This document shows, in pieces, positions 4,271-33,576 of a DNA stretch of 64,000 nt. Each line of letters opens with the position of its first letter. Position 1 is the stretch's first letter. Source of the DNA: Eutreptiella sp. 'Long Island Sound 2002' (Eukaryota > Protista > Euglenida). Under the pieces are notes generated by a model. The model was not told where the DNA came from, did not search any database, and saw only the letters and a list, made by a program, of their open reading frames with translations. The stretch covers positions 179,552,001 to 179,616,000 of the forward strand of contig OZ038378.1 in the NCBI GenBank assembly GCA_964036045.1, given 5' to 3'. A program made the position numbers and the translations under genes.

Positions 4271-7200
4271 ATGATGCATTTGGGGTCTGTGTTTTACATA
4301 CTGGCTTTTGGGGTTTATCAAGGAGCGAGCACATGCACAGCCACACTGACACCAACACCAACACTGTCGCCAACGCTGACCCTTAGTTCAACCCCAACTG
4401 TGAGCTCCACCCCGACGGTGTCCCCCACACCGTCACCGACAACTTCACCTACACTTTCCTCAACAACATCTCCAACGCCATCCTCCTCTCCAACACCAAC
4501 TGTGAGCCGAAGTCCGTCGCCTTCCGCGACACCGTCCCTCACTGCAACCCTTTCCCCAACGTCTTCAGCAACTCAAACCTGCTCGTGCAGTCTGACACCG
4601 ACCTCCACGTTTACATGCTCCCCAACCCCTTCAGTGACCACTTCGCCGTCCCCAACATGCACCTGCAGCCCAACACGGTCGCCCACAGGAACATGCACAC
4701 CCACACCCTCGCCAACCACCTCACCATCCCCGAGTTGCTCCTGCAGCCCTTCATCAACAGCCACAACATCATCTACGTGGTCAGCCTCCTCTACATGCAC
4801 ACCTACCCAATCGCTAACACAGACGCCCTCACTCACGCTTTCGCCGACGGCATCCATTACACCCACCCCAACATCCTCACCCACACCATCATCCACCCCT
4901 TCACCAACCTCTTCATCTACACCATCAACCACGCACACAGTCACACCAACACAAACCCAAACACCTTCACTGACCCCATCTATCTCGAGATCACCTACTC
5001 CGACCCCAACTCTGTCGCCGACCCCCACGTGTTCCCTCTCTCCAACTGGCACTTCTACTCCAACGTCCACATCAACACCCACATCAACGCTGACATTAAC
5101 AGGCTCACTCTCACCCACTCCGTCATACACGCATTCAGTCACCTCCACAGCAACATCGACGCCGACATTGACATCCACGTTGACCCCGACAATCACTCCA
5201 ACTGCAACTGCAACGCCATCGCCAACGCCAACGCCGACCCCGACTACGACGACCTCTCCCACCACATCCTCCACTCCCTCGTGCACGGCCACATCGACAC
5301 CAACAGGATCGTCCACCCCAACCCCGACTTCTTCACCCACCATCTCTCCGACAGTATCCTTGACCTCGTCTGCAAGCTCTTCGGGAACACCATCTGGGAC
5401 ACCATCTGCAACACCATCTTGTACGCCTACACCCACCACAACATCATCACCAACCCTCACGACCACCCTGACACCATCACCGTCCCCCACACCCACACCC
5501 ACACCCACACCCACACCGACCGCGACCCCCTCCCTCAGCCCCACCAGCTCCCAATCGTCAACACCAACGTCAACCCTGACGCCTACAGCTTCACTCAGCC
5601 CCTCCCCAACCTCAACACAGACGCCAACCCTCAGTGCCACGCCCACCCCCACCTCCTCAGCAACCCCCAGCTCCTCTCCCACCCCTACGCCTACGCCAAC
5701 TCCCACGCCAACCCCTACGCCTACGCCAAGCCCGACGCCATCCTGCTCGATGTCGGTCCTCGTGACGCGGTCTCTGACAGCCACTGCAACCCCAAGCCCG
5801 TCCGACACCCTGTCCCTTTCGAGCATCTTAATCCTCACGGCATCCGGATCTCCTTCGCCGTCGCACACGTGGTCAGCCACCATCACTCGGGCCTTTTTGA
5901 CGTTGTCTCCCACCGTCTCCGGTACGAGCACTGAGTTGCTGCGGCAATCTTCAAGCCGAAGCCGCACCACAACAGCCTCTGCCCTGGCCTCCCCCAGTCC
6001 GTCCCGCACGAGGACATCGTCTTTCAGCATCGCCACGTCCCTCAGCCCAACTGCAAGCCCCACGGCCACAACCAGCCTGCAGCGTACCCTTTCCCCCACG
6101 GCATCCCGCTCCATAACGCAGCCGAACGCGCTCACGCGCTCCCTCAGCCCCACGTCCACCCGCTCCGGGCCGCAGACCTGCACCGTCTCCACAACGCGAC
6201 CCCTCAGCCCCACGCTGTCACGGTCCCTCTCCCCCTCATTCACGCTCACGTGGTCCTCCACGCCCACCCCCACCCTCTCGGGGTCCACCACCCCGACGCC
6301 CACGGCCACGGGCACTTGGACCCCAACGCTGTCCCGCTCCGTCTCCGCTTCCGTCTCCCACTCCCCAACGTGGGCCCGCACGCCAACCCGGAGCTCCGTC
6401 ACCGTCTCCGCCTCTGCGAGCCCCCGCAGCCCTTCGCCGTCCCGGTCCTCCAGCCTCAGTCCTACCGGCTCGTCACTGAGTCGCACCCCGTCCCGCACCC
6501 TTTCCCCAGTGCCCAGCTTCGCCTTCACCCGCTCCCTCTCGCGTGCGTCACTCACTGCGTCGCCCACGGCCAGCACTCACTCGCAGTCCCCCTCCCCAAC
6601 AGCCTCCGGCACGGCATCTTCATCCTCGCGCCCCAGCCCCACGCGGTCCCAAAGCAGATTGGGCTCGCCCTCGTTGTCGTACTCCCCGACTTCCACATGC
6701 ACCCGCAGCCTTTCCACCCCAAGTCTCACCGCCACCCGTACGCCCCCCCGGACCGCATCGCGGTCCCAGTCCTCCACTGCTACCGGCTCCCAGAGCTCGG
6801 CAACCCGTACCCCAACGCAGAGCACCAGCCCATCGCCGTCCTGCGCCCGCTCCAAAACTCTGTCCCTGTCCCCCTCGTTCACAGTGACGCAAACCTGTTC
6901 CCGCCGCGCCACGACCACTGACTCCCGGACCTTGACAGCATCCACGTCGCGGTCCTGCCTGGGCTCCACGTCGCTGTCCCTGACGGCCACCCTGAGCCTC
7001 AGCCCTTCACGCAGCCCCAGGAAGTCTCTTTCGCGCTCGGTATCGCGCACGACGCCGTCCGGCTCACAGTCCGCCTCCGCCACCTCCTCCCAGATCCGTA
7101 CAGGCTCCTCAACCGCGACGGAGTCGTACCAGCCGACCCGCACCGCATCCGCCACTGGCACGTTCAGCCCCAGCGCCAGCCTACGGAGGTCCCCTAGCCG

Positions 7201-10200
7201 GACCTGCAGCGCCACTGCCTCCCCCTCCGTCAGCACTGCCTCCCGGACCCCCTCCCCCACTCCGACCTCGAGTGCCTCGCTGACCGCGCCTGCGTCCCCG
7301 TCTGCTTCACTGTCCTGCACCGTGAGCCCCACGGCCTCCTGCAGCCGACCGCCCACGCGCAGCTTCACTGCCTCGGCATCCGCCACGCTCCTGCCTACGC
7401 GGACGTTTTCCGCATCGCTGCTGAGCGCCTCGCGGTCGGATTCGCCGTCGCCGGATCGTACGCGGAGTGCCTCCGCAACCGTCACGCTGTCGGGGACGCA
7501 AACGCCCACCGGCACCCGCGCCCGCCCCGGCAGCGGCACTGCCACCAACTCTGGCACCGCGTCGCGGTCCGGCACGGGCTCCGCATCGCCGCGGCCGACG
7601 GGCACGACGACCGTCACCGGGTCGCAGACCGCGTCGCCCTCGTCGCATGGCACGGCCTCCGGCACCGCAACGGCCACGTGGTCCCGCCGTCCGAGCGGCA
7701 CCGCATCCGACACCCGAACGCCCACCGCCAGACCCACCTGCACGACCAGCGTCTCCCCCAGTGCCACGGGGTCCCGCAGTGCGAGCGGCAGCGCGACCAC
7801 GGCAACGGCCTCCGCCACGGCCTCCTTGGCCCTCACTCGCACATGGTCGCGGACCGCCACCCTCTCGCGGTCCTGCACCACCGGCACCGCGCCACTCACC
7901 CTCTCCCAGTCCCTCTCGCCGTCCACTTCACGGCCGGCCACCGCCAGTGCGTCGCGGTCGCGCACGTGCAGCGGCAGCGGCAGCGCCGCCGCGACCACCG
8001 CGAACACCGACAGCCGCAGCGGCACTGGCACGCGGACCGGCAGCGCCGCCCCGACCCGCACCGCGACGCCGACCACGTCGGTGTCCCTCACCACCACACG
8101 GGCCCCTACCCGCACGTCCACGGGAAGCGACTCGGCCACGCATTCGCGGTCCGACAGCCGCAGCCAACAGCTCTCGTCGTCCGTGACCCGCACCGCCACC
8201 GACGGCGACAGCGGCAGCAAAACCCGCATTCAGACCCCCACCGCGTCCGACCGGCCGCCGGGCACCGCCAGCGCCACGCGCACGCGCACCCCCCGGCCCA
8301 CCGCGACGCGCACCGGCACCGACTCATGCACCGGCTCCGCAACGGCGTCGGCGCCGGCCACGGGGTCCCTCACCGCCACCGCGACGCCCGTGGGCACTCG
8401 CACCTGGACCGCCTCCGGCTCCTTCTCCTGCACCCACACCCTCCCGCGCTCTCCCACCCGCTCGTGGTCGGGGCCGCCGTCGGCCTCTGCCACCCACACC
8501 GCCACTGCCAGCCCCTCCAAGACGCAGTCCGCCGTCCCCAGCGCCCCCGCGTCCGCCACCGCCACCATCTCCGCGTCTCTCACGCCGGCGGCCACCTGCA
8601 CTGCCACGGGGTCCCGCACCTGGTCGCCCTCGTGCCTCCCCGCGGCCTCCGCCACGCTGTCCCTCAGCCAGGCCCCGACCCACTCCCAGACCCCCACCGC
8701 CTCCCGTCGGGTCCGGAGCACCCGCACCGTGTCGCCCACCCGCGCCAGCACCGCCACCCGCACCCACACCGGCTCTGCTACGTACCCCCTAGCGCTCTCC
8801 CGCACCATCACAGAGACGCCCACTTGCCGACCCACGTCCACTTTCTCGCGGACGGGGACTCGCAGCGCCACCGCACCCCCCACTGCCACCGCCACCGCCA
8901 GCCCCTCCCCCTCTCCCTCCGACCATGGGACCCGATCCCCTTCCTGGTCCCTGCGCTCCACACGCTCCGGCACAACCACGGAGTCCTGGGCCTTTACGCC
9001 CTCCGCATCCCCATCCTCCGTCACCCGCACGCCCTCTCGAGGGCTCACCGCCACCTTCACCGACACCTGGAGCCCCTCCGCCACCGCTACGGCAACCGCC
9101 GCACGGGACCCCAGCGCCACCTGCAGCCCCACAGCGTCTGCCCCAGCGGCCCCCACGCCCACCACCTCCGGCTCACTCACCGCCTCGTGCTCTGCCAGTC
9201 GCCTGCGCACCGCCACACCCTCCTCAACGCCGTCCCGCACCCGACTGCCCACCTCGACATTCACACGAAGCGGCACCGCGACAGTGTCCACAACAGCCGC
9301 GCCAGCCCCCAGCGCCACCGCCAGCCTCGCCGCCCTCCCCACCCTCACCGCCACACGCTCCGACTCCGCGCTGCCCCCACAGACCCGCACCAGCTCTCCC
9401 CCGCCGACCCTTACCCCCACGCCGGCCCTGTCCCTCACGGGGCCCACGGAGTCCCCGTCGCTGTCGTGGTCGCCGACGGGGACCTTCAAGGCCACACGCA
9501 CCTTCACCGTCACGCGCACCGCGTCCGGCCCCGGGCCCCTGTCAGTCTCCGAAACGCCGACCGACACCGCAACACGTCCCGCCGCCCGAACTGCGACGCT
9601 CACCAGAGCCGCCTCGGCATCGGCATCGCGCCCCGTGACCGTCACAGCCTCCGGGCAGCCCACGTGCACTCTGTCATCCACCCCAAGCGGCGCCCGCCCG
9701 CTCTCCCGAACCTTCACCGCTTCCCACAGTGGGACTCGATCTGCCGCCCGCTGGAGCCTGACCTGCAGCGCCACCCGCACCGCATCCTCAGCGCCGGAAG
9801 TCACAGCCTCGCGCACTGCCTCCATCGCTCCCACGCGCACTTACACCCCCACGTCCACATGCAGCGCCTCCTCCACGGACCCCCATGGGCCAACCCCATC
9901 CCGCAGCGCCCCCCCTACCGCCTCCGTCTCCAGCAGCGCAACCGCCACCGGCTCCTTCCGTGGCTCGATTTGCCGTACACCCACCATCAGCCCCTCGCAG
10001 ACGGGCACACGCAGCCACGACCCCCTGCGCACCCTCTCTTTTACGGAGCCCGCCACCCCCTCCGGTACTGCCTCCGCCTCCACACTGCTACGGCCCACTC
10101 CCACGCGGTCGGCGACTGCCACGGGCACCTGCGTGGCTGCTACGCGGACGCACACCCCCACCCCCACAGCCACATATTGGGTGGTGACCGCATCCGACTC

Positions 10201-11320
10201 TGAGCAAGTCGCCCCCACCCTCTCTGCCACACCCGCGCCCACGAACAGCCACAGCGTGTCTGAACTCCCAACTGCCTCGCAGACGCTTGATGTCCGGAGT
10301 GCCACCCTCGACCTCACCTCCACGGACTCCGCCCCCGACCGAACAGAGACATTCAATTTGACGGCGACGTGGAGTCTTGACGTCGCATCGATGTCGATGG
10401 TGGCCACACAGAGCCGGACGTCGCCCATGACGCACACCCCGACTCCGACCCCGACCCCCACCCCAACCCCAACCCCAACGGCCACTGGCACCGTCGTCCC
10501 GACCGCCACCTGCACCCCCACCCCCTCCTCAACCCCCACCCCCACGGCCTCCCCCACACCCACCCCATCTCCGACACCGTCCGTCACGCTGACCCGCTCC
10601 CGCACGCCGCTGCCCACCGTCTCCGAGACCCCAATCCCGACCCGCACAGTCACCTGCACGCTAACCGCCGTGCCCACGCACAGTGGCACCGGCACGAGCA
10701 CCCCTATGCCCACCTGCACTCCCTCCCCCTCCCCGACGCCCTCCGCGTCCCCCATCCAGACCGCCTCCCTGACGTCAACCCAAACACATACCGCAACTGC
10801 GACACGCACTGCGACCGTCACCCGCTCCCGTTCCGGCACCCGCACCGCAACCCGCACGCTCGACCCAACCACGTCGGCGACACGGACGGGGTCCGCCTCT
10901 GATACCCACACCCCGGTCCCTACGGCCACTCTCACAGCGACCCGGTCCCGCACCGCGACCCGCACCGTCACGCTTCATCCCACCTGCACCCCCACGCCCT
11001 CCCGCACCTCCACTGTGGTGCCCACCACAACCTGGAGCCCCACCCCCACGGCCTTCCCGACCGCTACCCCCAGCGCCACCCCAACACCCTCCGCTACCAG
11101 CTCCCCAAGCGCCACTGCCTCCAGCCTCCCCACCCTCACCCCAACCCCCACTCCCACCGACACGGCCTCTGCCACCGTCACGCCCACCGGCACCCCCTCC
11201 GCGACGACCAGCCCAACGCCAACTTGTTCCAACACCAACACACCCTCGGAAACTGGCACACCCCTCCCAACGTTCACCGCAACAGCCGTGGAATGGCCAG
11301 TGAACGCCATCACTCAGCGG
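4271..11320 (+). CDS. Gene 1 exon 1: signal peptide plus ~2,340-aa Thr/Ser/Pro-rich mucin-like stalk of a polycystin-1/REJ-like protein
   Basis: ATG at 4271 ([20 protein letters not shown], hydrophobic leader). 7,050 nt stop-free, TP/SP and alternating S/T residues. Donor CGG|GTCTGC at 11321 (phase 0); the rest of the 4229..11710 ORF runs into MITE sequence. Confidence 0.85.
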
Positions 11321-13029
11321 GTCTGCCCTCCACGCCCCTCGTTGCCCTCTCAATCTCACAACGCATTCCTCATGGCCCCATTTTCAGTCCTATTGGTGGG
11401 ACGGAGAACCATTTTTGGGGGGTTGGTTACGGCGGACGGTTGGACCCCCCGCTGGACCCCGCAACCAACGCCAACGGGACCAGCAGTTAGGTCTTACACC
11501 CTGTGTCTTATGCTGCCCGCCGCATGTCTTTGCTGGTTCAGATCACCCCCGCAGGAAGGGGGCTGTCCCCAAGGGGGGCGGCCTGTTCGAATTAGACCCC
11601 CGCCCCCCCCCCCCCACCCCTCTTCCAGACCCCCAAAGTTTTCGAACCCGTCTTTCTCCAATTTGAGATTTTGGGGGAAAGTGGGGGAAAGTTCGGCGCC
11701 GAAAATTTAATGAAACCGTTTTTTCTCCCTGCTGAGGGGGTAGTTTTTTTTTTTTTTAACCCTATGTGTCTATACTCAAAATACTCAGAATTTTGTGGAG
11801 AATTCAAAAATGGGTTAAAAACACAAGGAAAATTTTGACCCCCGACCTGACCTCCGGGTCGGACCTTGGCTGACGGGAGCCTGAGCTAATGGGCAAATTT
11901 TTTCTGAAAAATTTTCTTACCCCAGTTGTGTATGTTCAAAATGATCAGCGTGTCATGGGGATCATTTTGAGGTATGTATGTTGGGGTACCCACCAACCCC
12001 CCCTGGGGACCCCGGCGGCTGACGGGCCGACCCACCTCCCCCCCCCCCCCCTCCAGACCCCCAAAAGTTTTCGCACCCAGTTGGGGTCTAGAATTTAAAC
12101 AGGCCGCCCCCATTGGCTGTCCTCTTGGGCGACGCGGGAAGGGCCCACGGCGCTGGTGACAGATGGTTCAACCACAGTTTCCAGTTCTGGAAAACGGAAA
12201 AATCTTTTTGGACATGCGCCTCTCAAATGCACCAGCTCGATGAGTCAGTTCAAAAAATCACGTTGGTTGACCTGTTTAGGCCCGTGTTGAAAAGATAGCA
12301 GATAGCAGTGTTCAAGCACTGTTCCTGACAATGTAGGCTGCATTTTGAAAGTTTGCACAGGATACGAGGTTCTCAGTGTGCTCAATTTCGTTACCCCTAA
12401 AATGATCGACTTGGGCCACAATATCAGAAATCAACTCGGTGTCTGTTTTGGTTCGGTTTTGCAGAGACATGGCTAATTGTGACCAATTTTGGGGGCAGTT
12501 ATGGGCTGTTTTTGGCCGCTAATTTGCAAAATTACGAACAAAGCTAACCCACCGCAAGCAAGGGATGTGTTGGAATGCTCCGGATTTGGAATCTATTGGG
12601 ATGCCCCAGATCTAGATTGTATTGAGATGCCGGGTATTTACATTTTATGATATGCTTCACATCTAAATTGTATTTGGATGCTCCAGCTCTAGATTGTATT
12701 GGGAAGCTGCCAGGGAGCTGTGTACAACAAACGGCCTGAGCAGCAAAAAATTTCCACTTCTGTGGAATTACACTGGCTGTTTGCCACATCACACACCCTT
12801 CGTTGCTCAGACAGGTGGGCTTTGGGGTGCACACAGAAGGCCACAACGTCTCACCTGCTCCCCTGGGAGGTGGGGGGCGGATGTTGGTGGCCTACCCCTA
12901 CCCCTACCCTCTCGGTGGACACACATGGCACTGAGTAAAACGTGGACTTCATCATTGCCCCAGCCCGCCCGTCCTGCTGTCGTTGTCCCATCCACGCACG
13001 CCTCCCCTCACATCCTCACCATCCCTTAG

Positions 13030-13293
13030 GCACAGCCGGAGCTGGAGGTGATGGCACGCCCCGCGTGCGGCGACGTGGTGTTGGACGGCCGCGGTACTGT
13101 CGGTGGCGGGGCCTACGACTACTACTGGGACGCAGGGGGTGGCACCGCAGACCTCCGTGCGTTCCTGAGGGCTCAGAACGGGACGGTGGTGGGCGTGCCC
13201 TTGGGGCTGCTGCACGGGGGTGCCCTCCTGTTCCAGGTCTCGGTCTGCCTCCGCAACACAGGGCTCTGCGATTTCGCCACGAGGCCTGCGCAG
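13030..13293 (+). CDS. Gene 1 exon 2: start of PKD/REJ-like region
   Basis: Acceptor ccatcccttAG|GCA (phase 0). Encodes AQPELEVMARPACGDVVLDGRGTVGGGAYDYYW..., the 'C...LD..s..gg...y.W' pattern of REJ-region repeats. Donor CAG|GTGTGT at 13294. Confidence 0.8.
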
Positions 13294-14980: not shown

Positions 14981-16569
14981 GCTATGGGTCCCCAGGTGGA
15001 GCTGGCTGGGGCTGAAGTGTGCCGTGAGGGCGCCTGACAGGACCCCAGCACCATGGCGCGCAGGGCAAGGAGGACTTTTGGTGGAGCCTGGCAATGACGG
15101 GTGGCGCTGTGACTAGGTCTAGAAATTCCAGCACCGTCAACCTAAGGACCCCCCCCCCCCTTTCCCAAGGCCCTCTGGGGCTTGGCCGCGTGTGTACTGA
15201 TGCGGATGCCAGAGTGATTGTCGAGGGTAGCGACCATCGCTGAGCTACGGCCAGGCCCTCTGGGCCCAAGATAGCATGAGGACCAACAGGGAGTGAGGGC
15301 CCTCAGCCAGGGGCGGGGGTGGGGGGCGGCCTAGTGGAGGGGAGGGAGGATGGGAGGACCACTTTTGGGGGGCTGGTGGTGATGGATGAGAGGCACCAAA
15401 CTGGCGGTGCGATCCGCCAAGAGAATACTGGATTGCAAGGCGCGGCACAGCCCTGTTTTCCTTCTGCTCCAAAAGATGCCGCTCATGTGGTGTGCACAGT
15501 GATGCGCAAAAGGGAACAACACACCGTTTCGTAGGTGTCACGGTGGAGAAGCGCAGACCAGGAATTAAACCTCGTGCCCTGGGGTTGAGGGCATGACCTG
15601 GGCTTGAAGGCATGTGCGCAGACCCGACTCAACTACCACAAGATCCCATTTGCTTAAGGCTGAAATGTGACATGTGGTTGATACATACGTCCAAAACAAA
15701 CTTGCTTCAGCGCCTGTGGCACCGACGGCCCTCCATGCCCCAAGATAGTGCGGACGAGTCAGGTATTGACCGACTGAGCTGGGAGTCCTGTGGGTACGAC
15801 TGTTGTGTGCAGGAAATGGGGGGCATGCATGAGGCGTAGGTGCAGGCCCATATCGCCCTGTGCATCGGAAAGGGAATCAGGGGCAAACCATGGGTTGTGC
15901 CCGCACTGTGCGACAAGGAGGCTATTTTCCCTGATGGCCCGTTTTCCACGATGGCCAAGGTGACCGCAGTAACTACTGTGCTTCCACACAGCAATGCTCA
16001 GATTCTTACTCAGTCCAAAAACTCAGAAAATGAATTAAAACAAACTATGCTTCACAGTGAAAATGCCAGATCTGCTGTTTTTGCCCTGTGGACGTAGCTT
16101 CCCCCCGTGGTGGGTGGTTTTCAGGGTGGTCACATGAAAGCTAACTTACTATTGGGTGCTGTGCCCGCGCTGTGCAGACCCGCCCCCATAGGCCACCGGC
16201 ATGCCCTTGGATTTGACTGGGGTGAGGACGAGGTTGCCACGGTAGGAGGACAGAGCCCTGCCCTGAAACGTTGGAACTACACTGGGGGAGGGGGTGCGTG
16301 CCTCGTACACACACACAACAACCACCCGACAACAACCGAGCAACACGCCGGCCCTGAATACCTCCGCGGACCTCTTGGATCCCGCCCGTCGCTGTGGGGT
16401 CCGCATGCGCTGTGGCCGACACCAGCCTCCCCCCCCCCCCCCAACGGCGGTGGTGCAGCCCCATGGCGCCATGGCTGTGCCGCCCCTGCCTACACGCTGC
16501 CCCGCGATTGCGCCGTCCTCATTCCCATTTGGACCCGCCGGCCATCGCCTCTCCCTCGCCGCTCTGCAG

Positions 16570-18779
16570 GTGCTCGTTTCCACCGGGACGGCCATCGAGC
16601 TGCAGGGCCCGCCCGCCGTCGCCGCGCCCAGCGAATGGACGTCCCTCGACGCTTCGCCCTACCTCGGCCTCCCCTGCAGCCCACAGGCCCCCGGCACCAC
16701 CTACGCCTGGCGCTCCGACCCTCCTCGCGCTCTCCCCGCCTCCGCCGTGGACCCGCAGCTGCGGCTCCCCCCCGGCACCCTCCCACCGGGCGCCTACACG
16801 CTCTCCCTCACCGCGCGGCACCCCCACACACTCCTCTCCGCCGTCGTGCGCTTCGCGGTCACGGTCCCCGCCCACGGACCTCTGCACGCCCGCATCGTCG
16901 GCGGGGCGGTGCAGCAGCACCCGAGCGGCGGCCCGCTGACGCTGACCGCCACCGCGACGGAGGCCGGGCTCCCGCTGGACCCCGCGCGCCTCCGCGTGGC
17001 CTGGGCCATCTGCGTCAACGTGACCTGCGCCGCCCACAACGCCCCCTGCGCCCGGCCGTTGCCGGGGTCGGCCACCGGCGCCGTCCTCACGGTCCCGGCG
17101 CCGCTCCCGGTCGGCCCCCTCTGTGTCACCGCGACAGTGGCCCCCCGTGACTGCACCGCCGACTGCGCCGCCGCCGCCGCGGCGCACGTCAGTGTCCTCA
17201 TGTCCCCTGTGCCCGTCGCCGTGGGCCTTGTGTGGGCCCCGGCCACCGGCCCCTTGTCCACGTACTGCCCCGACCGCGACCTCCTCCTCCAAAGCCAAGT
17301 CCGGGGCAACGGCACGGCCGTCACAGAGTACGCCTGGGGGGTCCGCGCCGCCGCCGCGCCGTTCGCCCCATACAACCTCACGGCCCTGGACCCCCCCGGC
17401 AGTGCGCTGCGGCTGCCGGCCGGCGTCATCGGCGCCGACGTTGTCGTGCGGCTCAACATCACGAGCCCGCAAGGCAAGGCCGTCGCGGAGGTCCGTGTGC
17501 CGGTCGCGCGCGCGCCGCAGGGCGGGTGGCTGGCAGTGTCGCAAGTAACAGGCCCCAGTGGAGAGATCCGCAGCGGCGAGACGCTGCAGCTGCGGGCGGG
17601 CGGGTGGCAGCACCCGTCCAGAGAGCCCCTCACGTACGTCTTCTCCTACGCCGTGGCGGCGGTGGGGGCCATCCCCCTGTCCCTCAGCCCCACCCACAGC
17701 CCCGTCCTCGTGCTGCGGGTGCCGTACCTGCCCCTGGCCAACGGTGCTCCGCAGAACGTGACGTTTGCGGTGCGCGTCGCCGGGGCCTCCGACTGCGCCG
17801 CGCGGGCGACCGTCACGGTCCCGGTCCTGCCGGTAGCGGGGCCCAGCGCCGCGCTGGAACGCGGGGCGCAGGAGGTGGCTCTCCGCCGCAACGTCTCCGC
17901 CGCTGAGACGTTCGTGTCGGAGGGCGTTGTGGCGGCAGCGCTGCAATTGCTGGTGGACGCCAACAGCCAGGGCCGCTTTCCCACGCCCGCCGCCGCCGCG
18001 GCGCGGCAGCAGGGCCTTGCGGCGCTGGTAGACCAAAGCGGGAAGGCCGCCGCGGCGGAGACCGGGGCGGCGGCCGCGACGCCCGCGCAGGTCCAGGCGC
18101 TGGTCGCGGCGCTGGTCTCCGCTTTCAGCGTGGCCCCGAGCGCGGCAGAGCGCGCAATGGTGTTGGCGGTTGCCGCGGACGTTGCCGGGTTGCAGGCGCT
18201 GGCGGCGGTGCCGGAGCCGCTGCGCGCGGCGGCGGACCTGCTGGAGGCGGCCGGCGTGTCGCTTGCCGGGCTGTACCGCGCGCACGCCCGCGCGCGCAGC
18301 GGCTGGTGGCCCGCTGGGCCGGCGCGGGAGCCGCTGTACCTCAACGTCAGCGCCCAGGCCCCGCAGCCGCCGGAGATCCCCCAAATCCTCGGGATCGTGG
18401 ACGCGGTGCAGGCGCTGGTCGCCGGGACGCTGCTCTCGGGGGAGTCGCGGTGCGTGAACGCGACGGGCGCGCACGTCTGCGTCCGTCGGGACGTGTGCGC
18501 GCGGGGGCGCACCCCGTCCCCCGCGCGGTCGCCGTTCACCGTCGCGCGCCTCGTTAGCGACTGGTTCGAGGCCGAGGGGCTGCGCGACGGCAGCCTTTTC
18601 GACGTCCGCATCGCGGACCTGCACCCGAGCCCGTACTTCTGGACCGCGTCCACGGCGGGCCCGGCTCATCTGGTCTCGGTGCGGGACGGCGTCGGGACGG
18701 AGCTGCTGCGGGCGCGCCCCGGCCCCGACCCTGTGATCTCTCTGACGTTGTCGGGGCTGCAGGCGGTCGATCCCTTCAG
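16570..18779 (+). CDS. Gene 1 exon 3: REJ-like domain and GAIN-like region
   Basis: Acceptor ctctgcAG|GTG (phase 0). GC3-rich frame with REJ-like segments (TTYAWRS, LRLPPGTLPPGAYTLSLT, LHARIVGG, EYAW, PQGGWLAV, GW..P..PLTYVFSY). Donor TTCAG|GTGCCT at 18780 (phase 2). Confidence 0.88.
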
Positions 18780-19954
18780 GTGCCTTCCCCGTCCCGCCCT
18801 GGCTCCTGCGCCCCCTGTCGCGCAGTCTCCCTCCATCGTACCTCACGCGGGGAGGGGGCGGGTCTCGTTCGGGTAGAAATAAACCTGTTGTTCGTGCGAA
18901 ACACTGGAAACCGTTGCAATATTTGATACGTGTGGACGACCATGTCTCTGATATTCATCTTGAGCTTTACGGAAGATTCGTACAGAGATTGACAATCACC
19001 GACAGCGGTTACAATACGATGGCTCCGCCCCACGGAACTGTGAATCACCAATGCCTTCACCAGCGAACTAGGGATGGTTTTCAATGCGTATTTGCTATTC
19101 TTTGTACCGGTCCTTCACCTTCCTTCCTGAAGCCATTGAAACGCGGGGGCGGGTGCAGCCAGGCCACAGCGTATGAGAGGGGGCACTGAGCGCTCCGGGG
19201 GCTGAGCGAATGGTAATGCCATATGGATCCTCATGTCTTGACCACCACAACTCGCCGCCATTCAGAGACAGAAATGGTGGGGTCAAGACAGCGGCTGGGC
19301 GGACCTTCAGGAGAAGATCGGCAGAGCATCATGCGGTGAAGAATAAACGGGTGACTGCGCAGGGCCCCATAAAGAAACCACAGATGGACTATATGTCACA
19401 CAGGGGGGGGGGGGGATGGCTGGACCCCAGTGGCGGTTGGACTGAAGACCAGCATGACCCCTCCGCCCGCCTCCGACCCTCCGCTCTCATGGGCCTGCCA
19501 CGCCGCATTTGGGTGCATGGGCTCCACCCAAAAGGGCTGGAGGTGAATTCCGCCGGTGACAAGAACTGTGGGGAACAGCAGCAGGATTACCCTGAGCCCC
19601 GTCACGACAGATGCTCTTTCTGAAGGATACCACGAGCACGTGCATTTCACGGTGACAATACCGGGGAAGTGGGGCTTTCAATTGCGGAGCCAGTGGTTTG
19701 AAATCAGACTGGTCCTTCAAGTAGACTATCACCCTGCACTGCTTATGGGTACGCTGTACATCTATGGCGTCTCGCAATGCGCAATGTGAGACCCTGCCAC
19801 GTGATGCTTGGCCAGGGAAACTTATGATGTCGGTACAGAAGTGATCCGTGACCAGGCCACCAGGTCCCAGCCCCTGTGTAAAGGAAGGGGTGGATGTTGA
19901 GGAGCACTGATGATGATCTCTGCCCTATGCCTGTAGCGGATCGCCCAGGGCCAC

Positions 19955-21588: not shown

Positions 21589-22459
21589 GGCCCTTACATG
21601 CCCCTTCTTCGACGCCAACCTCCAGCGATGGAGCCTGGAAGGCGTAGCCCCGACTCAGAGCACCCTCTCGTCTGTGACGTGTGAGGCTGCCCACCTCACG
21701 CCCTTCTTGGCCGCCTATTACGATCCCACCCCCACCCTCACCGCCACCCTGACCCCCACCGCCTCCGTCCCCCCAGAAAGCCCCCCGCCCGCCTGGATTG
21801 TCTTGCCCATTCTCTGGGGCATCTACGCGCTGCTCATGTTGGCCGCCTTCACACTGGACTACCACCGCCTGGACGACGCCAAGTACCATTTGGGGCTGGA
21901 GCGGGTGCTCCCCCCCAGCGCCGTCGAACGGGTGGCCCCGGGCCGCCGGCCGGGGCTGTGGGCGAGCGTCGCCGCGCACCACGCGCTCCTCGCGCTCCCG
22001 TTCGCGCACCCGAACTGGACGGCGCTGCAGCGGGTGACGGTGTGGCAGTCGGCGGTGGTGGGGCTGTTCCTCGTCTGCCTCGTGTGGCTGCCGCCCGAGG
22101 GGCTGGCGCTGCGCTGGGTCTGGGCCCCCCTCGTCAGCGCCCTCGGCGTCTTCGCCGTGGCCCAGGCCCTGGCGTACCCTTTCGCCCAGACCCCGGCGTT
22201 CCCCGGCGTCAGCCGCAGCGCAGTCCGGGTCCAGTTCGTCGACCCCCCGGCGTCGGAGGAGGAGGTGCCTTCGGCGCTCGGCGACGCCGGCAGCAGCGAC
22301 GAGGAGCCGGTTCCGGCCGCGCGTGACGGTGCGGCGTGGGGCGCGGCCCCGCACCCGGTGCCGCATCGCGGCGTGAACCCGCTGTCCAGGGCTGTGGTGG
22401 CGACCCCGGTCTTGTCGCGACCGCAGTTGGACAAGCTGCGCCTGCCGGGCGCTTTGATG
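21589..22459 (+). CDS. Gene 1 exon 4: GPS motif and TM1-TM3
   Basis: Acceptor tccaacAG|G (phase 2, joining to give PFR-ALTC). GPS motif C-PFFD..LQRWSLEGV...VTCEAAHLTPF. Hydrophobic helices WIVLPILWGIYALLMLAAF, VTVWQSAVVGLFLVCLVWL and WVWAPLVSALGVFAVAQALAY. Donor ATG|GTGCGT at 22460. Confidence 0.9.
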
Positions 22460-25272: not shown

Positions 25273-25680
25273 CCGGGCGAAAAACCAAACATTGCTGCAG
25301 TGCGGACAGAGCTGTAGAGTGGTGATGTATGACGGCGAACGCTATGAGCTTGAAGAAAATGTTGGGCGTCACACACACACACACACACACACACATGCAG
25401 GGCCGAACACAGAACTGATGGTTTGCAGTAGTGGTAGGATGTAGGAATATTGAACCTCGCAGTTTGAGCATGATTGGAATTGATACCTTGGCACACACAC
25501 ACACATGCACACACAGAACTGTCCTCCATCAAAAAGCAGGCCATACAACGGACCGTGCACTGGGCGCTGGTTGTACCATGTGGTGGATTACCAACGTTCA
25601 TTTCCACCTTCAACGCCCCCTTTGTACAGGATTCCTGCCCTACTTCCCTCCACTGGCCCTCTGTCACCACCACCGCACAG

Positions 25681-26377
25681 GATATTGTGCCCAAGCACGA
25701 CCGCCTTCAGACGCCGCTCATGCTCTACGCCGAGTCGTGCCCCGTGACCGACGCCACCGACGCCGAGAAGTACGTGGCGGTGCTAAAGCTGCGGCAGCAG
25801 CAGCAGCCCTCACGGGCCACCAAAGCCGAGACGTGGAAGCAGGGGGTGGCCGAGGCCCAGCTCAACCAGAACTACGTCCGCGCGGCACACATTTTCATGA
25901 ATGCCGCAAATGCCGGCCTCGCGCCGGGCCAGTCCGAAAAGACCCTCGAGTTCGGGAAGCGCTGGGCCCGACACTACGCCACCGCCGGCGGCCGCGCGGC
26001 GCCCAACTTCGAGTGGGAGTGGATCCGGCAGTCGCGGAACCCGGCGAACACGCGCGTCGCGGTGCACCCGTCGCCCGCGCGTGCCGCGCCGCGGCAGCCG
26101 CCGCAACTGCAGGTGACGCTGCTGCACGAGCCTGTGCCGATCAGTGAGCCCGAATTTGATGTCCTTGAGGACTGGACGGCGTGCCCGCCCGAGAACGAAA
26201 GCGACGAGATCGGCGACGAGAACAAGGGCAAGGCCCTGCAGAAGAAATCGGTGTCTTTTAGCAGAAAAGTCATGAAGAAGGTGGCGGAAGGGGCACCGGC
26301 AGACTTGGCGGTAGCGTCACCGGCGTACAGCGAAGTGCACATGGACTTGTTTGAGGTCGACGCGCCTGAGGACCCAG
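25681..26377 (+). CDS. Gene 1 exon 5: hydrophilic loop
   Basis: Acceptor caccgcacAG|GAT (phase 0, matches the exon 4 donor). GC3-rich frame DIVPKHDRLQTPLMLYAE...EVDAPEDP. Donor CCAG|GTATGT at 26378 (phase 1). Confidence 0.75.
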
Positions 26378-26531
26378 GTATGTGCGCACCCAGGGGCAGG
26401 TGACTGTGAACTTCTCTAGACGATTTCCTCCCCCTTTCCATGATGCCACATGGTGTGTGGCGGTGCGTGTTGCGTATGGTGTACGGTATGGGGCGGTGTG
26501 TGGCGCGCTGTGGTGCGGTCTGACGCGGCGC

Positions 26532-26875
26532 GGTGTGGTGTGGTGTGGTGTGGTGTGGTGTGGTGTGGTGTGGTGTGGTGTGGTGTGGTGTGGTGTGGTG
26601 TGGTGTGGTGTGGTGTGGTGTGGTGTGGTGTGGTGTGGTGTGGTGTGGTGTGGTGTGGTGTGGTGTGGTGTGGTGTGGTGTGGTGGGGTGTGGTGGGGTG
26701 GGGTGGGGTGGGGTGGGGTGGGGTGGGGTGGGGTGGGGTGGGGTGGGGTGGGGTGGGGTGGCGTGGTGGGGTGTGGTGTGGTGTGGTGTGGTGTGGTGGG
26801 GTGGGGTGTACTGTGGTGTGGTGTGGTGGTGTGGGGTGGTGTGGTGTGGTGGGGTGTGGTGGTGTGGCGTGGTGG
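26532..26875. repeat. Pentanucleotide satellite (GTGTG/GTGGT/GTGGG)n
   Basis: About 345 bp of 5-bp period, with a (GGGGT)n block at ~26694-26760. Confidence 0.95.
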
Positions 26876-27612
26876 GCAGGCACCAACGGTTGAAGCATGC
26901 CGCAGCATGCCGCAGCACACTGAAAATTCGGCTCAGACCAAAATATTGATACCATCTGTGCAGTAGAGAATGATGGTACTCTAGTGGATAGATGAGTGGC
27001 TGTGGTATACAGGTCCCTGATTCAATTCCCAGAGCTGTCAACACGATGTCCTACAGGCAGAGACAGCAAAGGTCCAGGCTGACCTATTTCCCCCCCTGTT
27101 TTTTCTTTCTTGTGGTGTTGTGCTTTGACAGGCCCTTGTTATCTTCACTTTGTCTTCTGATGTCTACTGTTGAACCCACTGCCGAGGGGACAACACAACC
27201 CAAGAGGAACAAGGAGACAACCAGGAGTACCGTTTGCAGTGGGCAATTGGAGAAGGCATTGGGCAGTACCTATGTTGTACAGACACCCAGGGTTTGTGTT
27301 TGATGTGGCGGTTTGCCACCTTTGAAGCTTGTTGGAAAATTAGTTTACCCCCACCAACGGCTTGAAGCATGCCGCAGCATGCCGCAGCACAGCAAATTTT
27401 TCTGGGGGACCGTTGGTGCCTGGTGGTGGGGTGGGGTGGGGTATGGTGTGACCTGGTCTGGGCGATGGCAAGGGCTGTTGTGGGGTAGGGTGCGACCACC
27501 GCCCATCACAGAACACGCAGCCCATGTCACTCACCACACCAACACTCACCAATCTCGCTGGTCCACGTCCCATCCCGCCATGTTGCACCCTCGTCATCCC
27601 CGTTGCACGCAG

Positions 27613-27950
27613 ACGCCAAAGTGGTATACGTGAGTGCCCCAAACCAAAGCAGCCGAGGGGAGCTGAACAGGCGCGGCAGCTACATGCAGCACGGGGGGCC
27701 CGATGACCCATTTCTGACCCTCGACGACGCGATGGAAGCCATCGGCCGGTCCCCGAACGCGACGTTGGTGCTCATGCCGGGGGTGTACCCACAGCTGCTG
27801 ATCGCGAACCCGCCCACGCATTTGACAGTGCAGGCGATGTGGCTGAACGGCACGGATGAGGTAGTGCTGCGGCCACGGCTGGGGCACGTCGGGAGCACGT
27901 TGCGGATCTGCGGTGCCAAGGACTGCCTGGTGAAGGGCCTGCGGATCGAG
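27613..27950 (+). CDS. Gene 1 exon 6: DUF1565/right-handed beta-helix-like cap
   Basis: Acceptor ttgcacgcAG|AC (phase 1). VVYVS...G..DDPFLTLDDAM...TLVLMPGVY matches the 'yVs..G...Pf.Tl..A...ti.v..G.Y' beta-helix N-cap. Donor GAG|GTATGC at 27951 (phase 0). Confidence 0.75.
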
Positions 27951-28479
27951 GTATGCTCCCCGGGGGGCCGACTCTGCAGGTCCTGGGACGCAGATCCCCC
28001 CCCCCTCCCTCCCCAGGGGGCCTCCCGAACCCGGACTCCCCCGGTCACTGCCCCCCCCCCCCCAAAAAAAACCATGGCCTTGTGCCAACCCCCCCCCAGA
28101 GGGGCCCTCGGCCAACCGTTAGTGGGGGCGGGCGGGCCAAACCCGAGGGGTCGGTCCCCCCGTGGTATGCTCTGGATTGAGAGCGACCAGCAGGTGCTTT
28201 ACTCGAAGCCATGGCCCAAGCGTCCGAGGCGTACCCCAAGGCTGCGGCCTTCAACCAACGCTCAACAGCCTGGAGCTGCTTCCCCACGCCCTGGTCTGTT
28301 GGCCAGGCTTGTTTTCCCTTGGTCTACTGGGGCGGGCGGCGAACCACTAGACAGTCACGGGCCAAATCACATCCCCAGCGATGTGGTAGATCAACCCGCC
28401 TATGAGAAAGCAACGGGGGCATTTGGGGGGTATGTTGGTTGTGATATGCCACTAGGTTTTTTGGGGGGGGACTTTTTTT

Positions 28480-29150
28480 GGTGTGAGGTCCACATTCCGT
28501 TGCTTTGTCAGCCTCACCTTGCACCACAGAATGGACTCACTGTACCCTGCTTTCATCCACACAAAACCTGGATGAGGGGAAAGGTTGCCCTCATCAGGGG
28601 TGCTACCAAAGTTTAACCACTTCATTTTGTGGTCCCGAATCAAAAGAGGCTGTTGGTGTTGGTCCAGATGGTTGGACGATGATGCATAGGCCCCTGCCAG
28701 CTGACGGCTGACGTCCCAAAAATAGCAGGTTGCTGCAAACCGGCTGTACGAGGCTTTTTGGCCTTTGTACCAAACTCCTCCCAACTCACCTTCACATAGC
28801 TCACACCCCCAAAGAGCGCTCTTTTGCACACCAAAGGTTTCTGTGGTGCATCGGGGGAAGCAACAGGGCGTTGCATGAATTTGTATGCAGACATGGTAGC
28901 TGCCGGTTGACAAAAAGAGGCAGCAAGCAACAGGGGCACCACCCAAAACGGATGAAAATCTCAGACATGTCGTCAGTACAGCATGCGGACCCAGGGCTTC
29001 CAAATAGCCCTTTTCAAGGGCTTTCCGAAGATACCCCACATACCCCTACCTATCGGACACTCAGTGGACACAAATGAGGCAACAGTGGCACCGATCCCCA
29101 AAAACGCTCCGTGTTGGCATAAATCCTGCCGTCCCCGAGAGATATACCAT
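28480..29150 (-). mobile_element. Decayed interspersed repeat (copy B of 13990-14980)
   Basis: Shared fragments YLSGTAGF, FG.RCHCCLIC, GYLRKALEKGYLE and KQRNVDLT between the two copies. Confidence 0.5.
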
Positions 29151-30203
29151 GGGCACTATGCACATGGTACTGGTGGCGATGGAAAGGGCAAGGGTTAGAT
29201 GCGAATAATAGACACATGAAAGGCATTCGTGCTCTTCCGCCATGTCAATGGCCCAGCCCCTGGCAGCTCATTTGCATCGGCTTATAACGCCTGTTTTGTC
29301 AGGGGCAGCATCAACCATCGGTGAGCTGCAGCACGGACGTTTCCAACTTGGGGGTTCGTGGGTTTGGGGCCGAAAAGTCGCCAGTAGACCTGAGTTCCCA
29401 AATATGGCGAGTAGGGGGAGGGCTGGGGAGGGCTGGGATTGATGGATGGATGACGCAGGCATGGGCTACTCCCTGAGGTACAGGCTGGTGGTTCTCGTTC
29501 CTGCCAGTGTACGCGTCTGACGTTCGGTCTATGGCTTGGCGTTTCGCCTGGGCAATTTCCTAGTTTCCAACTGAAACCCCCTCCACCCCTTCCCCCAGAG
29601 CATCGATCGGTGGGCAATTTAACGCTGGCAGGTCTCCCGACCAGACATACCGCTGTGTGGGGGAGGAGGGGTAGAGGGACGCTGTGGGGCCCTGCGGCAG
29701 ACTGCACGTGTGATACAGTACTAGTAACATGCAATTTTTTTTAGCCACATTCCCATTGTCAAAGAGAATAGGGTGCCGGTATTCTGTAGCACACGGCTAC
29801 CTTAGCCCCATTTCTATTGTGAAAGCAAGTAGGGGTGGCGTGTAACACACAACTACTACATCTACTTGCCTTCACCGGGGGAATGAGGTCCAGGTAGTTG
29901 TGTGCTACATGGTCCCTGAACCTATGCCCAAGGGGGATGGGCTGAAGGTATTTGTGTGTGACCTTCCATTATGGGTATGTCATTAGGGTTTCTATGTGTT
30001 ACGTGTACCCTAACGATATTCCGTTTCTGAATGGAAATGGGATTCAGGTAGTTGTCTGTCACATACCCCCGTCTGAAAGAGATTGTCCCCAGTGCGATTT
30101 GGGATGAACATGCTGAGGGTCTTGAACAATTGAGGACTCTGGGTTTGTGGAGAATGATGGACAGTGTTGAGGGTCGCTTCCCCTTCCCTTTGCACAACTG
30201 CAG

Positions 30204-30387
30204 GGATCCAGCTGCATTGAGGCTTTCCGATGCCCTGGGCTGCGCCTCGAAGCAAACCGGTTCCACGCGGTGGACCAAGTGTACATCAGCGATACGGACC
30301 CGGACGTGTCCATGACAAACAACTCCCTTGAGGAGATAACCCCATCGCTGTGGAACCGGTCGCTGGCATACCGCTGGATCACTGTAG
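30204..30387 (+). CDS. Gene 1 exon 7: beta-helix rungs leading into TM4
   Basis: Acceptor cccttccctttgcacaactgcAG|GGA (phase 0). GSSCIEAFRCPGLRLEANRFHAVDQVYISDTDPDVSMTNNSL...YRWITV. Donor GTAG|GTCATA at 30388 (phase 1). Confidence 0.72.
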
Positions 30388-31670
30388 GTCATATTGCCAT
30401 CTGCCAGACCCAACCCGCAGTGCTGATCCACGATTTGAATGACCCACGTGTGGGTTTTGTGCCTGCAAACGCTAAACTCACAGTCACCAGCGGCACAAGT
30501 GAGCTTTTGAGGATTGTGGCGCAATTTGTCCCCGAGACCAACATGTCATTGCGATGAAAGGAAACAAACCTCCGACCCACACATCGTGCCTGTTGCCACT
30601 GTCGATTGATCGTGCAATGCCTTTCGGTGGAGTGGTCCCTTTCGCAATGTTGCAGTAGAGAGAGGCGATTGTGGCCTTTGGTGACTGGAGGACATGTGAC
30701 ACAAATTGTCCCATGCAGATTGCGTCCCAACACGATGTGTGCTGTTGTATTGGGGGGGTTTGCCGAGCTGGGTTCACCCTGTGGAGGTTTTACAACCCTA
30801 CTTAGGGTCCTGGGTGAGCAACACATTTGAGCAAGCAGCAACAAGCAGGCGCAAGAAAACTCTTTTTGGGGACACTGTGGCTCAAAAATGGCATCCAAGT
30901 AGCTCAAAACAAATGTAGAGCAAGTGCGCATCACTTGCAACAGGTTTTGTGCCATTTCGAGCCGTCTAGCCCGTTCTATGGCCGATTTAGTGTCCAAAAG
31001 TGGCTGTTTTTGGGCTGTTTTCAGGACGACCGTCCTGAAACTTCAGGACGATCGCAGGTGCGTGAAGTAGGCGTCTCCAATGAGGGCCATTTTCCTTCCA
31101 TAGCGGTTGGGCCATCAAACGATTGTAAATGGGTTTTCGATAAGGCATCTTCCACACCGTGGTGCTACACCATGGTCCATTTTGAGGTGAAAACGAGCCC
31201 CTTTTGAGCTGTTTTTCAGGATGATAGTCCTAAACGTGCAGGACCATCTCCAAAGCAAGCCGTTCTTCTTCCACAACAATTTCCTATGCATTGAGCAAGA
31301 CTAGGACCCAGCTCGGTGCTAGTCGTAAGTTTTGATTAGTATTGGATGGTATACGAGTGATGGTGCTGGACCCAGAACGGGTGAAAAATGACTTTTTCCC
31401 AAACCATTCTGGACTGATTAAGGGCAGTAGAAATGGTACCCCGGAGCCCCGATGAAAGTCCCATCTTTCTCCCGCAAAAGTTCAAAAATGTGTTGAATGT
31501 GCATGCGCGCGTGGGTGTGCACAGTCAAGAGTCTACTGCAGTGTGCAGTGTGTGTAGTGTGCAGGTATGGTGGGTCGCACGCTGAGGGCATGCAGTCGTT
31601 CGGTATGGAGTGCAGTAAGTGGGCTGATGTGATGGCTTGTTTGCAGTCACTTTCTCTTCTGCCTGTTCAG

Positions 31671-31822
31671 GATGGATCCTCAATTTGGGATGGCTCCTGC
31701 TGTGCAGCGGATTGATAGTGTGGTTGTCCTTGGGGATCACGACCCGGAAACTGTTTACCTCATGGCTGGTCTACAGCGGCATCGCCATCGCAATCGATTG
31801 GGTGGTGCTGCAAGTTCTCAAG
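31671..31822 (+). CDS. Gene 1 exon 8: TM4-TM5
   Basis: Acceptor ttctcttctgcctgttcAG|GA (phase 1, giving WITV-G-WILNLGWLLLCSGLIVWLSLG...WLVYSGIAIAIDWVVLQVLK). This resembles the polycystin-1-family TM4/TM5 'W..s....d...qplK' segment. Donor AAG|GTACCA at 31823. Confidence 0.75.
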
Positions 31823-31899
31823 GTACCAGTCCTCCAGAGGGCGGGTCAGGGGAAGGGCGAGGTGTCCGCAGGCACTGTAGTAGACACGGGCAGTGTCGA

Positions 31900-32222
31900 G
31901 CGAAGAAAAAGAAACTATGAGCGACACTCTTTTCCAGTCGGTGACTCATCCACAACCCCCACCTCCTCTTCCGCAATGTGCACTGTTGGTGCTGGTTTCG
32001 GGTTGGGTTTGGGTGGTGCTGCAGGTTTTGCTGGGGGTGCAGTGTGTGCATTGCTGCTGCAGTTGGAGCCCAAACTAGAGCTGGAGCAAGCTGAAGTGTG
32101 AAGCCGACCGTCCCCTAATGCTGCTGCGATGTAGACCGTCGCCGTGCCGTGTAAAGGCACGTATGCGCCAAGGGACTGTGGGGGCCAAGAAAAGAATCAT
32201 CAAGTTCGGTGCTTGCGCAAGG
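31900..32222 (-). mobile_element. Partial member of the same TIR family in gene 1 intron 8
   Basis: Minus strand starts ccttgcgcaagcaccg (identical to 58983-58998), followed by a PAKPAAPPKPNPKPAP tract. Confidence 0.5.
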
Positions 32223-32359
32223 CTATGGAATCAAACAAAGGATCTCATCACACAGCTGCACAAAACACCGCGATATGTCCATCTCACCATAATGACAAAT
32301 ATGTGGTATAAAGGACGTAATTGCGTGCAGTCATCTAAAGCACAAGGCGCGCGCGCGCG

Positions 32360-32474
<115 letters not shown>

Positions 32475-33090
32475 GCATAAAGACACGCAAGCACGGACAC
32501 AAACACGCGCATGCACGCGTGCACTCAGAGGCGGGGGAGGGGGCAATCCGGTGGCAGTCACCCCCCACCAATTGCTTTGAGCTCCCTGAATTAGACTTGG
32601 GCAAATGGCAGGACTCAAAGTGAGTGCAAAGCGTCCGAACTGACCTTTTTGATCCCTGTTGGACGGTGAATCAGGGAAAGATTGTATACAACGCCGGTTG
32701 TGGGCGCGGATGGGATACACTGAATGTCAAGAACAACAAAGAAAAGAAACAAAGACAAGACACGAAAAGGCATTTATCTCGCAGCTTGCTTGGGTGTCAG
32801 GCGCTCAATTTCAACCGTGTACATACTGCCGGTTCAAACCCTATCTCTTACTGCACTGCACTCCAGAGTTTCACCATGTGCTCTGTGTGTGTGTGTGTGT
32901 GTGTGTGTGCGCCAGCCCCAGCCCCTCTTTTATCTTCCTCATTGGAAGCAGGTGGCGTCTGAAGGACCTGTGTGAGCGTACCTGAAGGCGCTGGGCACCA
33001 GCTCCCACAAAGCTGTTGTCAACAGTACGTATGCAGCTCCTTTCTGCCGTGGGAGCAACCGGGTAGCCTTTGACGGAAAGGGGGCTGGGG

Positions 33091-33350
33091 AAACCCTCCA
33101 CAACCCTCCACAACCCTCCACAACCCTCCACAACCCTCCACAACCCTCCACAACCCCCCACAACCCTCCGCAACCCTCCACAACCCTCCACAACCCTCCG
33201 CAACCCTCCACAACCCTCCACAACCCTCCACAACCCTCCGCAACCCTCCGCAACCCTCCGCAACCCTCCACAACCCCCACAACCCTCCACAACCCTCCAC
33301 AACCCTCCGCAACCCTCCACAACCCTCCACAACCCTCCACAACCCTGAAC
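33091..33350. repeat. 10-bp minisatellite (CAACCCTCCA/G)n
   Basis: About 26 units. A degenerate reverse-complement relative lies at ~61430-61530. Confidence 0.95.
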
Positions 33351-33513
33351 AAACTTCAACAACCCTCGACATTGCTCAAACCCTCCACACTTCTCCAATG
33401 GAGGAGGAAACCCTCTGCCCGATTGGGGGCTGGCTGGTGGCTGGGACAAATTCACGGCGGCTCGGCGCTCGCGGCGGAGGGGTTTGGCGTTGCGCTGCTG
33501 CGTGCGTTCCAAG

Positions 33514-33576
33514 GGGCTGTTCTTCGCTCTTCAGCGCCCAGTCCGGCAAATGTGGCACAAAGGGCGGAGGTCTTGA
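33514..33576 (+). CDS. Gene 1 putative terminal exon 9 (GLFFALQRPVRQMWHKGRRS*)
   Basis: Phase-0 acceptor gcgttccaAG|GGG gives a plausible hydrophobic-then-basic ending after VLQVLK. Total CDS would be 11,829 nt (3,942 aa). Other endings cannot be excluded. Confidence 0.35.
   Translation, partial: GLFFALQRPVRQMWHKGRRS

Follow-up and report, generated by a model that had tools for sequence, protein, structure and literature searches.

What is encoded between positions 4271 and 33576 of a stretch of the Eutreptiella sp. 'Long Island Sound 2002' genome, and do the nine exons that can be read there belong to one gene? The stretch, hereafter the window, is 64,000 nucleotides of DNA from assembly GCA_964036045.1 (contig OZ038378.1, forward-strand positions 179,552,001 to 179,616,000). 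A sequence-only reading of the window had proposed a single gene for a giant polycystin-1-like receptor, with a mucin stalk, a REJ-like region, a GPS, five membrane helices, a beta-helix module set among these helices, and neither a PLAT nor a channel domain. We put the probability at about 75% that 4271-33576 (+) is indeed one gene, and that it encodes a surface glycoprotein of the REJ-GAIN/GPS (polycystin-1-like) class with a family that extends across Euglenozoa. Searches were run exon by exon, or with natural contiguous relatives, rather than with the spliced product, and the coordinates of features inside exons 4, 5 and 8 are hand-computed approximations.

The gene model contains nine exons separated by introns of 1.2-3.3 kb. 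GT donors and AG acceptors were found at all eight introns, with pyrimidine-rich tracts before most acceptors, and the reading phases close over all nine exons, whose lengths add up to a product of ~3,942 residues. The nine phase-consistent exons proposed from the sequence were retained. The order of the encoded parts was compared with that in paralogs from the same genome. On C3, one paralog reads from REJ through GPS, the first three transmembrane helices (TM1-3) and the loop module to TM4-5 without a break, in one frame of 3,446 codons. In order, this frame encodes a signal peptide, Cys-rich repeats, two mucin-like regions, REJ (103 bits), GPS (21.3 bits), TM1-3, a Pro-rich loop, helices like those of exon 5, a module like that of exons 6 and 7, TM4-5 and a stop. 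At a C22 locus, the end of exon 1 and exons 2, 3, 4, 5, 6 and 7 were matched in the same order and on the same strand, and more family copies lie on C10, C11 and C19.

Outside this genome, exons 4, 5, 6, 7 and 8 are colinear on the Peranema protein P0043, where they match residues 61-306, 552-640, 728-809, 810-868 and 909-928, respectively. The exon 7 match (E 5e-6) begins exactly where the exon 6 match ends; the two abut at 809/810, and the exon 6/7 joint is therefore exact. Because of the single frame on C3 and the colinearity with a single Peranema transcript, we assign exons 5-9 to the same gene as exons 1-4. Both halves also occur together on single transcripts or gene models in Peranema, Entosiphon, Diplonema and Namystynia. 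A search for the same domain order in other Euglenozoa had been suggested as a check, and the whole order (signal peptide, mucin-like region, REJ, GPS, TM1-3, loop, beta-helix, TM4-5 and tail) was recovered both in the C3 open frame and on single transcripts from other Euglenozoa.

To which family does the gene belong? A profile of the loop module plus TM4-5, compared with 1.84 billion representative proteins, gave 4,148 matches at E <= 0.001. Whole-profile matches at the C-terminal end of a protein were all euglenozoan wherever a source was named. Members were found in Euglena gracilis, Peranema, Jenningsia, Keelungia, Neometanema, Entosiphon, a symbiontid, Diplonema papillatum (KAJ9456443.1) and Namystynia, and the window gene joins them through the colinearity of its exons 4-8 with P0043, the C3 frame and the C22 locus. 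The Diplonema and Namystynia proteins have a C-type lectin domain and REJ upstream, and a 3,762-residue family protein (P0011) combines TIG with REJ. The design, a mucin-like region with REJ/GPS, five helices and a beta-helix in the loop, is common to euglenids and diplonemids. The suggestion of a lineage-specific receptor needs correcting: the family reaches beyond Euglena and spans euglenids, a symbiontid and diplonemids. Our literature search found no description of REJ/polycystin-like proteins in Euglena, Euglenozoa or Diplonema, and nothing relevant on the evolution of polycystin-1 and GAIN domains in protists.

Exon 1 (4271-11320, +) supplies the start codon and a signal-peptide-like hydrophobic N-terminus (~4271-4330), followed by a mucin-like region of ~2,330 residues rich in Thr, Ser, Pro, Ala and Arg. 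Its frame contains 0 stops in 2,350 codons, compared to 40 and 9 in the other two frames and 12-33 stops per frame in the 2-kb flanks. The frequency of C at codon position 2 is 0.59-0.84 in each 600-base window, a constancy which indicates that a single reading phase is held across the 7 kb of the exon. Thr (26%), Ser (22%), Pro (14%), Ala (10%) and Arg (6%) lead the composition, Thr, Ser and Pro together making up 62% of 2,350 residues. The exon is not a simple tandem array and contains short imperfect tandem repeats only. A long region dominated by Ser, Thr and Pro behind a signal-peptide-like start is of the mucin type, and in the C3 paralog a region of this type shares one frame with REJ. 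When the end of exon 1 was used as query in a word-based protein search, nothing but bacterial Thr/Pro linkers came back. The region forms the distal N-terminal end of the chain, with no head domain beyond it, and for this reason it is a tail or brush; the label of stalk, given to it earlier, was abandoned.

The extracellular part continues in exons 2 and 3. Exon 2 (13030-13293, +), bordered by GT..AG, carries a first REJ-type repeat unit of 88 residues; it matches the C22 paralog with the order kept (E 4e-7) and lines up by eye with the start of the REJ region in the C3 frame. Exon 3 (16570-18779, +) encodes the REJ module and then an Ala-rich helical region, which is likely the helical half of a GAIN domain. 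The REJ assignment passed the Pfam threshold on this exon (PF02010, 32.1 bits, E 6.4e-8, cut-off 25). The exon also aligns with the C3 paralog at 33% identity over 413 columns (E 6e-18), and contains 8 N-x-S/T sequons versus 1.16 expected, a count reached in 0 of 500 shuffles. A phmmer search of exon 3 against PDB chains produced no meaningful match, and a word-based protein search recovered only the unspliced open reading frame (ORF) call of the locus itself.

Exon 4 (21589-22459, +) begins with the GPS (~21596-21706), whose H-L-T site (~21692-21700) is intact, and continues with a short Thr/Pro stalk, TM1 (~21785-21853), a conserved motif ahead of TM2, a TM2-TM3 hairpin (~22037-22186) and the beginning of the long loop. 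The joint between exons 3 and 4 is gap-free, by eye, against the continuous C3 frame. Exon 4 matches residues 61-306 of P0043 with E 1.5e-12, and the GPS of P0043 scores 30.8 bits and passes Pfam. The Atlas neighbours of exon 4 are GPS clusters, which we treat as a lead only. By hydropathy, exon 4 encodes three membrane helices, and exon 8 (31671-31822, +) encodes another two, the TM4-TM5 hairpin, which aligns with TM4-5 of the C10, C3 and C19 paralogs. The loop between TM1 and TM2 is ~60 residues long and basic, with a semi-hydrophobic stretch within it. The proposal of a GPS followed by TM1-3 thus stands on the intact H-L-T site and three hydrophobic helices, with a GPS score below the Pfam cut-off. 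Taken singly, exons 2 and 5-8 had no Pfam match.

REJ is abundant in this genome. We counted at least 55 REJ matches, ~30 of them on small unplaced contigs (e.g. C1202, C701, C1511, C809, C1632, C1191), where they sit within uninterrupted open frames of 1,100-7,100 codons. These frames may be intronless giant REJ genes or DNA of other origin.

Does the protein carry the remaining parts of a polycystin-1? PLAT (PF01477) matched no exon, exon 4 included, and had no match genome-wide, in a search made without a positive control. PKD_channel (PF08016) matched none of the exons and had 51 matches in the 2.28 Gb of genome scanned, 0 of them in the window; the 7tm families, including 7tm_2, matched no exon either. 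All relatives end within ~60 residues of TM5. The predicted lack of PLAT and channel domains was thus upheld. Since the two defining features, PLAT and the channel half, fail, the protein is not a member of the polycystin-1 family, nor is it an adhesion G-protein-coupled receptor (GPCR). By analogy, it would work like the sensor half of polycystin-1 and of adhesion GPCRs. The 51 PKD_channel matches represent a large repertoire of PKD2-like channels, none of them close to the window gene.

The loop between TM3 and TM4 is ~560 residues long and holds a conserved helical motif and the beta-helix. The motif, ~75 residues long (~25792-26055), lies in the loop segment encoded by exon 5 (25681-26377, +). 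It is the best-conserved part of the loop, with 51% identity to residues 552-640 of P0043 (E 2e-24), and nine of its residues are invariant among six paralogs; paralogous copies lie on C11, C8, C13, C26, C17 and C22. The motif has no Pfam match, its profile found none in PDB, and the Atlas offered no usable lead. The C-terminal 787 residues of the C3 paralog drew no match in a word-based protein search.

The loop also holds a short, truncated right-handed parallel beta-helix of ~150 residues, with a cap and ~5 coils, identified by profiles and by structural models of relatives. The N-terminal cap and first coils are encoded by exon 6 (27613-27950, +), and the last coils, with the linker to TM4, by exon 7 (30204-30387, +). 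Profile A2, built from six members including exon 6 of the window, matched the PL6 alginate lyase AlyGC (5gkd) in PDB with E 2e-6. It also matched other right-handed beta-helices, namely another alginate lyase, a GH120 xylosidase, a pectinesterase and phage tail fibres. Profile A3, in the search of 1.84 billion proteins, matched giant proteins with Pfam Beta_helix (E 8e-81), NosD and DUF1565 at E values down to 1e-45; DUF1565 itself is weak in three of the six profile members.

The structural models are of the C10 paralog and of Peranema P0043 rather than of the split exons of the window. The AlphaFold model of the C10 paralog has a predicted local distance difference test score of 79-96 over the first 130 residues, and its Foldseek matches are pectin methylesterases and PL6 lyases, with E 7e-4 to 8tne. 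In the model of the Peranema protein, one 10-residue block of the module scores 77 and all others score 84-97. The module superposes on the alginate lyase 6kfn with Z 13.9 and a root-mean-square deviation of 2.3 A over 126 residues, and on the pectate lyase Pel9A with Z 12.7; another structural match has Z 13.6. The claim of a beta-helix/DUF1565-like module was thus confirmed at the level of both profile and fold, through relatives. The closest relatives of the module outside the family are P0002-P0009 and similar proteins of 2,000-7,500 residues, which contain 5-12 tandem beta-helix units (Beta_helix, NosD, DUF1565) and are probably prokaryotic.

On which side of the membrane does the loop lie? 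The N-terminus, with the mucin-like region, REJ and GPS, would be outside, and three helices precede the loop; for these reasons the loop and its beta-helix probably face the cytoplasm, with the basic tail inside as well. In the Peranema model, five helices are long, and a further one, between TM1 and TM2, spans 14 residues. The corresponding loop holds a WW domain (32.1 bits), placed after the helical motif and ahead of the beta-helix, in near-identical paralogous exons on C18 (L025, C18:13553851-13557159) and C22 (L026, C22:15606244-15609552). Each of the two encodes the helical motif, the WW domain and the first beta-helix coils, with short tandem peptide repeats upstream in the same open frame. 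Modules of the WW type are intracellular.

The two least certain joints are those between exons 4 and 5 and between exons 8 and 9. Exon 5 brings neither a start codon nor a signal context. Exon 9 (33514-33576, +) encodes the last 20 residues, which form a basic C-terminal tail, together with the stop codon; its acceptor is AAG with a weak pyrimidine tract, and the tail is akin in length and character to the ends of the C10 and C3 paralogs and P0043. Reading through the exon 8 donor instead adds 93 unrelated residues. Intron 8 holds an open frame (32871-33512, -) that consists of a G/C-rich minisatellite coding for a repeated unit of ~10 residues and is probably non-coding repeat DNA, and eight other ORFs of the window had no Pfam matches. 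The expectation that an ORF finder would fragment the gene is borne out by two public ORF-style calls, P0188 (window 16294-18876) and P0048 (window 27684-28613), which are unspliced. These run out of exon 3 and exon 6, respectively, into the adjacent introns, and the locus is therefore mis-annotated in public protein collections. Elsewhere in the genome, a 24-mer of the Euglena spliced leader has 3,309 exact copies, compared to 0 for the reversed control; the copies are scattered along chromosome 1 on both strands and are not confined to arrays.

Among known systems, the window protein resembles the polycystin-1 family (PKD1, PKD1L1-3, PKDREJ and sea-urchin REJ) in having REJ, then a GAIN-type region and, directly before the first helix, a GPS with an H-L-T site (in exon 4 itself below the Pfam cut-off), and in its very large ectodomain, which is glycosylated in that family and predicted to be so here. 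It differs in lacking PLAT after TM1, helices 6-11 and PKD_channel, as well as leucine-rich repeats, C-type lectin and PKD repeats. Polycystin-1 has eleven helices, whereas the window protein has five, with the helical motif and the beta-helix between TM3 and TM4. A partial precedent exists in sea-urchin REJ proteins that have few membrane helices. With adhesion GPCRs the protein shares the GPS motif beside the membrane, and the GPS of the C3 paralog weakly matches ADGRF1 (E 0.003); the mucin-like N-terminal region also recalls some adhesion GPCRs. It departs from them in the number of helices, five instead of seven, and in the absence of a 7tm_2 match. The cap and coil pattern and the modelled fold of the loop module are those of beta-helix proteins (Beta_helix, NosD and DUF1565; PL6 lyases, pectin methylesterases and phage tailspikes), but the module has only ~5 coils and is set, probably in the cytoplasm, between the membrane helices of a eukaryotic receptor.

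Two giant membrane proteins offer further comparisons. Fibrocystin (PKHD1), of the ciliary-disease type, carries TIG and parallel beta-helix repeats, and one family member, P0011, has TIG together with REJ. In contrast to the window protein, fibrocystin has its beta-helix repeats in the ectodomain, passes the membrane once and lacks REJ and GPS. In Chlamydomonas, the mastigoneme axial protein Mstax is a giant Ser/Hyp-rich glycosylated chain held by a PKD2-like membrane region (bioRxiv 10.1101/2024.12.24.630281). The window protein is likewise a giant Ser/Pro-rich extracellular chain on a polycystin-type membrane region. Mstax has a PKD2-like channel-type region and lectin domains, whereas the window protein has REJ/GPS, five helices and no channel region.

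The role that we infer is adhesion or mechanosensing. The presumably glycosylated mucin-like chain would serve as a long tether or brush outside the cell. Pulling on it or binding to it would act on the GPS-cleaved GAIN module and the core of five helices, in the manner of polycystin-1 and adhesion GPCRs. On the cytoplasmic side, the helical motif and the beta-helix might act as a docking platform that recruits partners. The protein cannot provide a pore-forming subunit itself, and any ion flux would need a PKD2-like channel encoded elsewhere in the genome.

Several observations weigh against the gene model and the topology proposed here. The GPS of exon 4 scored 16.4 bits (E 0.013), under the Pfam cut-off of 22.5, with the H-L-T site intact. 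The 4/5 and 8/9 joints fall in poorly conserved sequence, and a helical region of ~150 residues, which lies before the conserved motif in relatives, was not found in intron 4, where the search gave noise. No RNA evidence or transcript was found for the locus, and the public protein collection has unspliced ORF calls only. Finally, exon 6 contains 3 N-x-S/T sequons versus 0.49 expected, a count that 4 of 500 shuffles attained and that is more in keeping with an extracellular than with a cytoplasmic module; in relatives the equivalent modules contain 0-2 sequons, those of C3 and C19 none.

Could the exons belong to two adjacent genes, one for a mucin-REJ-GPS protein with three helices (exons 1-4) and another for a small beta-helix membrane protein (exons 5-9)? 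The predicted-only joint between exons 4 and 5, the missing transcript and the helical region not found between the two halves would suit such an arrangement. We nevertheless consider it very unlikely, the least probable of the alternatives, since the C3 paralog joins both halves in one open frame, four other euglenozoans carry the two together in one transcript or gene model, the reading phase is kept from exon 4 into exon 5, and exon 5 lacks a start codon and signal context. Only slightly less doubtful is the possibility that the window copy is an unexpressed or decaying paralog. The lack of any transcript-derived protein and the unrecovered helical region point that way, against which none of the nine exons is interrupted, every splice border is intact and the 7-kb frame of exon 1 is free of stops. 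The side on which the loop lies can also be questioned. An extra membrane pass between TM1 and TM2 would put the beta-helix outside the cell, where it might bind or cut surface carbohydrate. The sequon enrichment of exon 6, the semi-hydrophobic stretch between TM1 and TM2, and nearest structures that are extracellular carbohydrate enzymes all suggest this. We regard it as improbable: the intervening helix is just 14 residues in the model, the C3 and C19 modules lack sequons, the same loop of a paralog holds a WW domain, the tail is strongly basic, and the ~5 coils are far fewer than those of the look-alike enzymes.

The main rival in terms of function accepts the same gene model and assigns the protein a mainly structural role, as anchor of a glycan-rich surface structure, either a filament or a coat (flagellar hairs or a mucilage layer, for instance), rather than that of a signalling receptor. 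Beyond REJ there is only the mucin-like chain and no ligand-binding head, Mstax provides a precedent (bioRxiv 10.1101/2024.12.24.630281), and a cytoplasmic beta-helix and helical motif could tie such an anchor to the pellicle or axoneme. The intact GPS and the conserved five-helix core point beyond passive anchoring, and paralogs swap the mucin-like region for lectin, TIG or Cys-rich heads in a receptor-like manner. On balance, a mainly structural role seems unlikely, though less so than the three alternatives above, and we favor a surface glycoprotein that senses or adheres.

Discussion of polycystin-1-type proteins usually centres on their partnership with, or kinship to, TRP-like channels. 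The euglenozoan family, conserved throughout a protist phylum, keeps a REJ/GPS sensor on five helices without PLAT or channel and with a beta-helix in an inner loop, and it therefore bears on how the architecture of polycystin-1 was assembled. We tentatively raise the possibility, itself rather unlikely on present evidence, that the family is a free-standing N-terminal half of polycystin-1 (REJ, GPS and a five-helix bundle), kept since before the split of euglenids and diplonemids. If true, this would favor the idea that animal polycystin-1 arose when a receptor of this kind became fused to a PKD2-like channel. GPS-dependent signalling could then also be studied separately from any pore, with the putatively cytoplasmic beta-helix as a previously unseen output domain. 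In public collections, ORF-style calls split the gene into unrelated fragments. Members of this family are candidate surface sensors for gravitaxis and mechanosensing in Euglena, whose genome has more than 50 PKD2-like channel matches.

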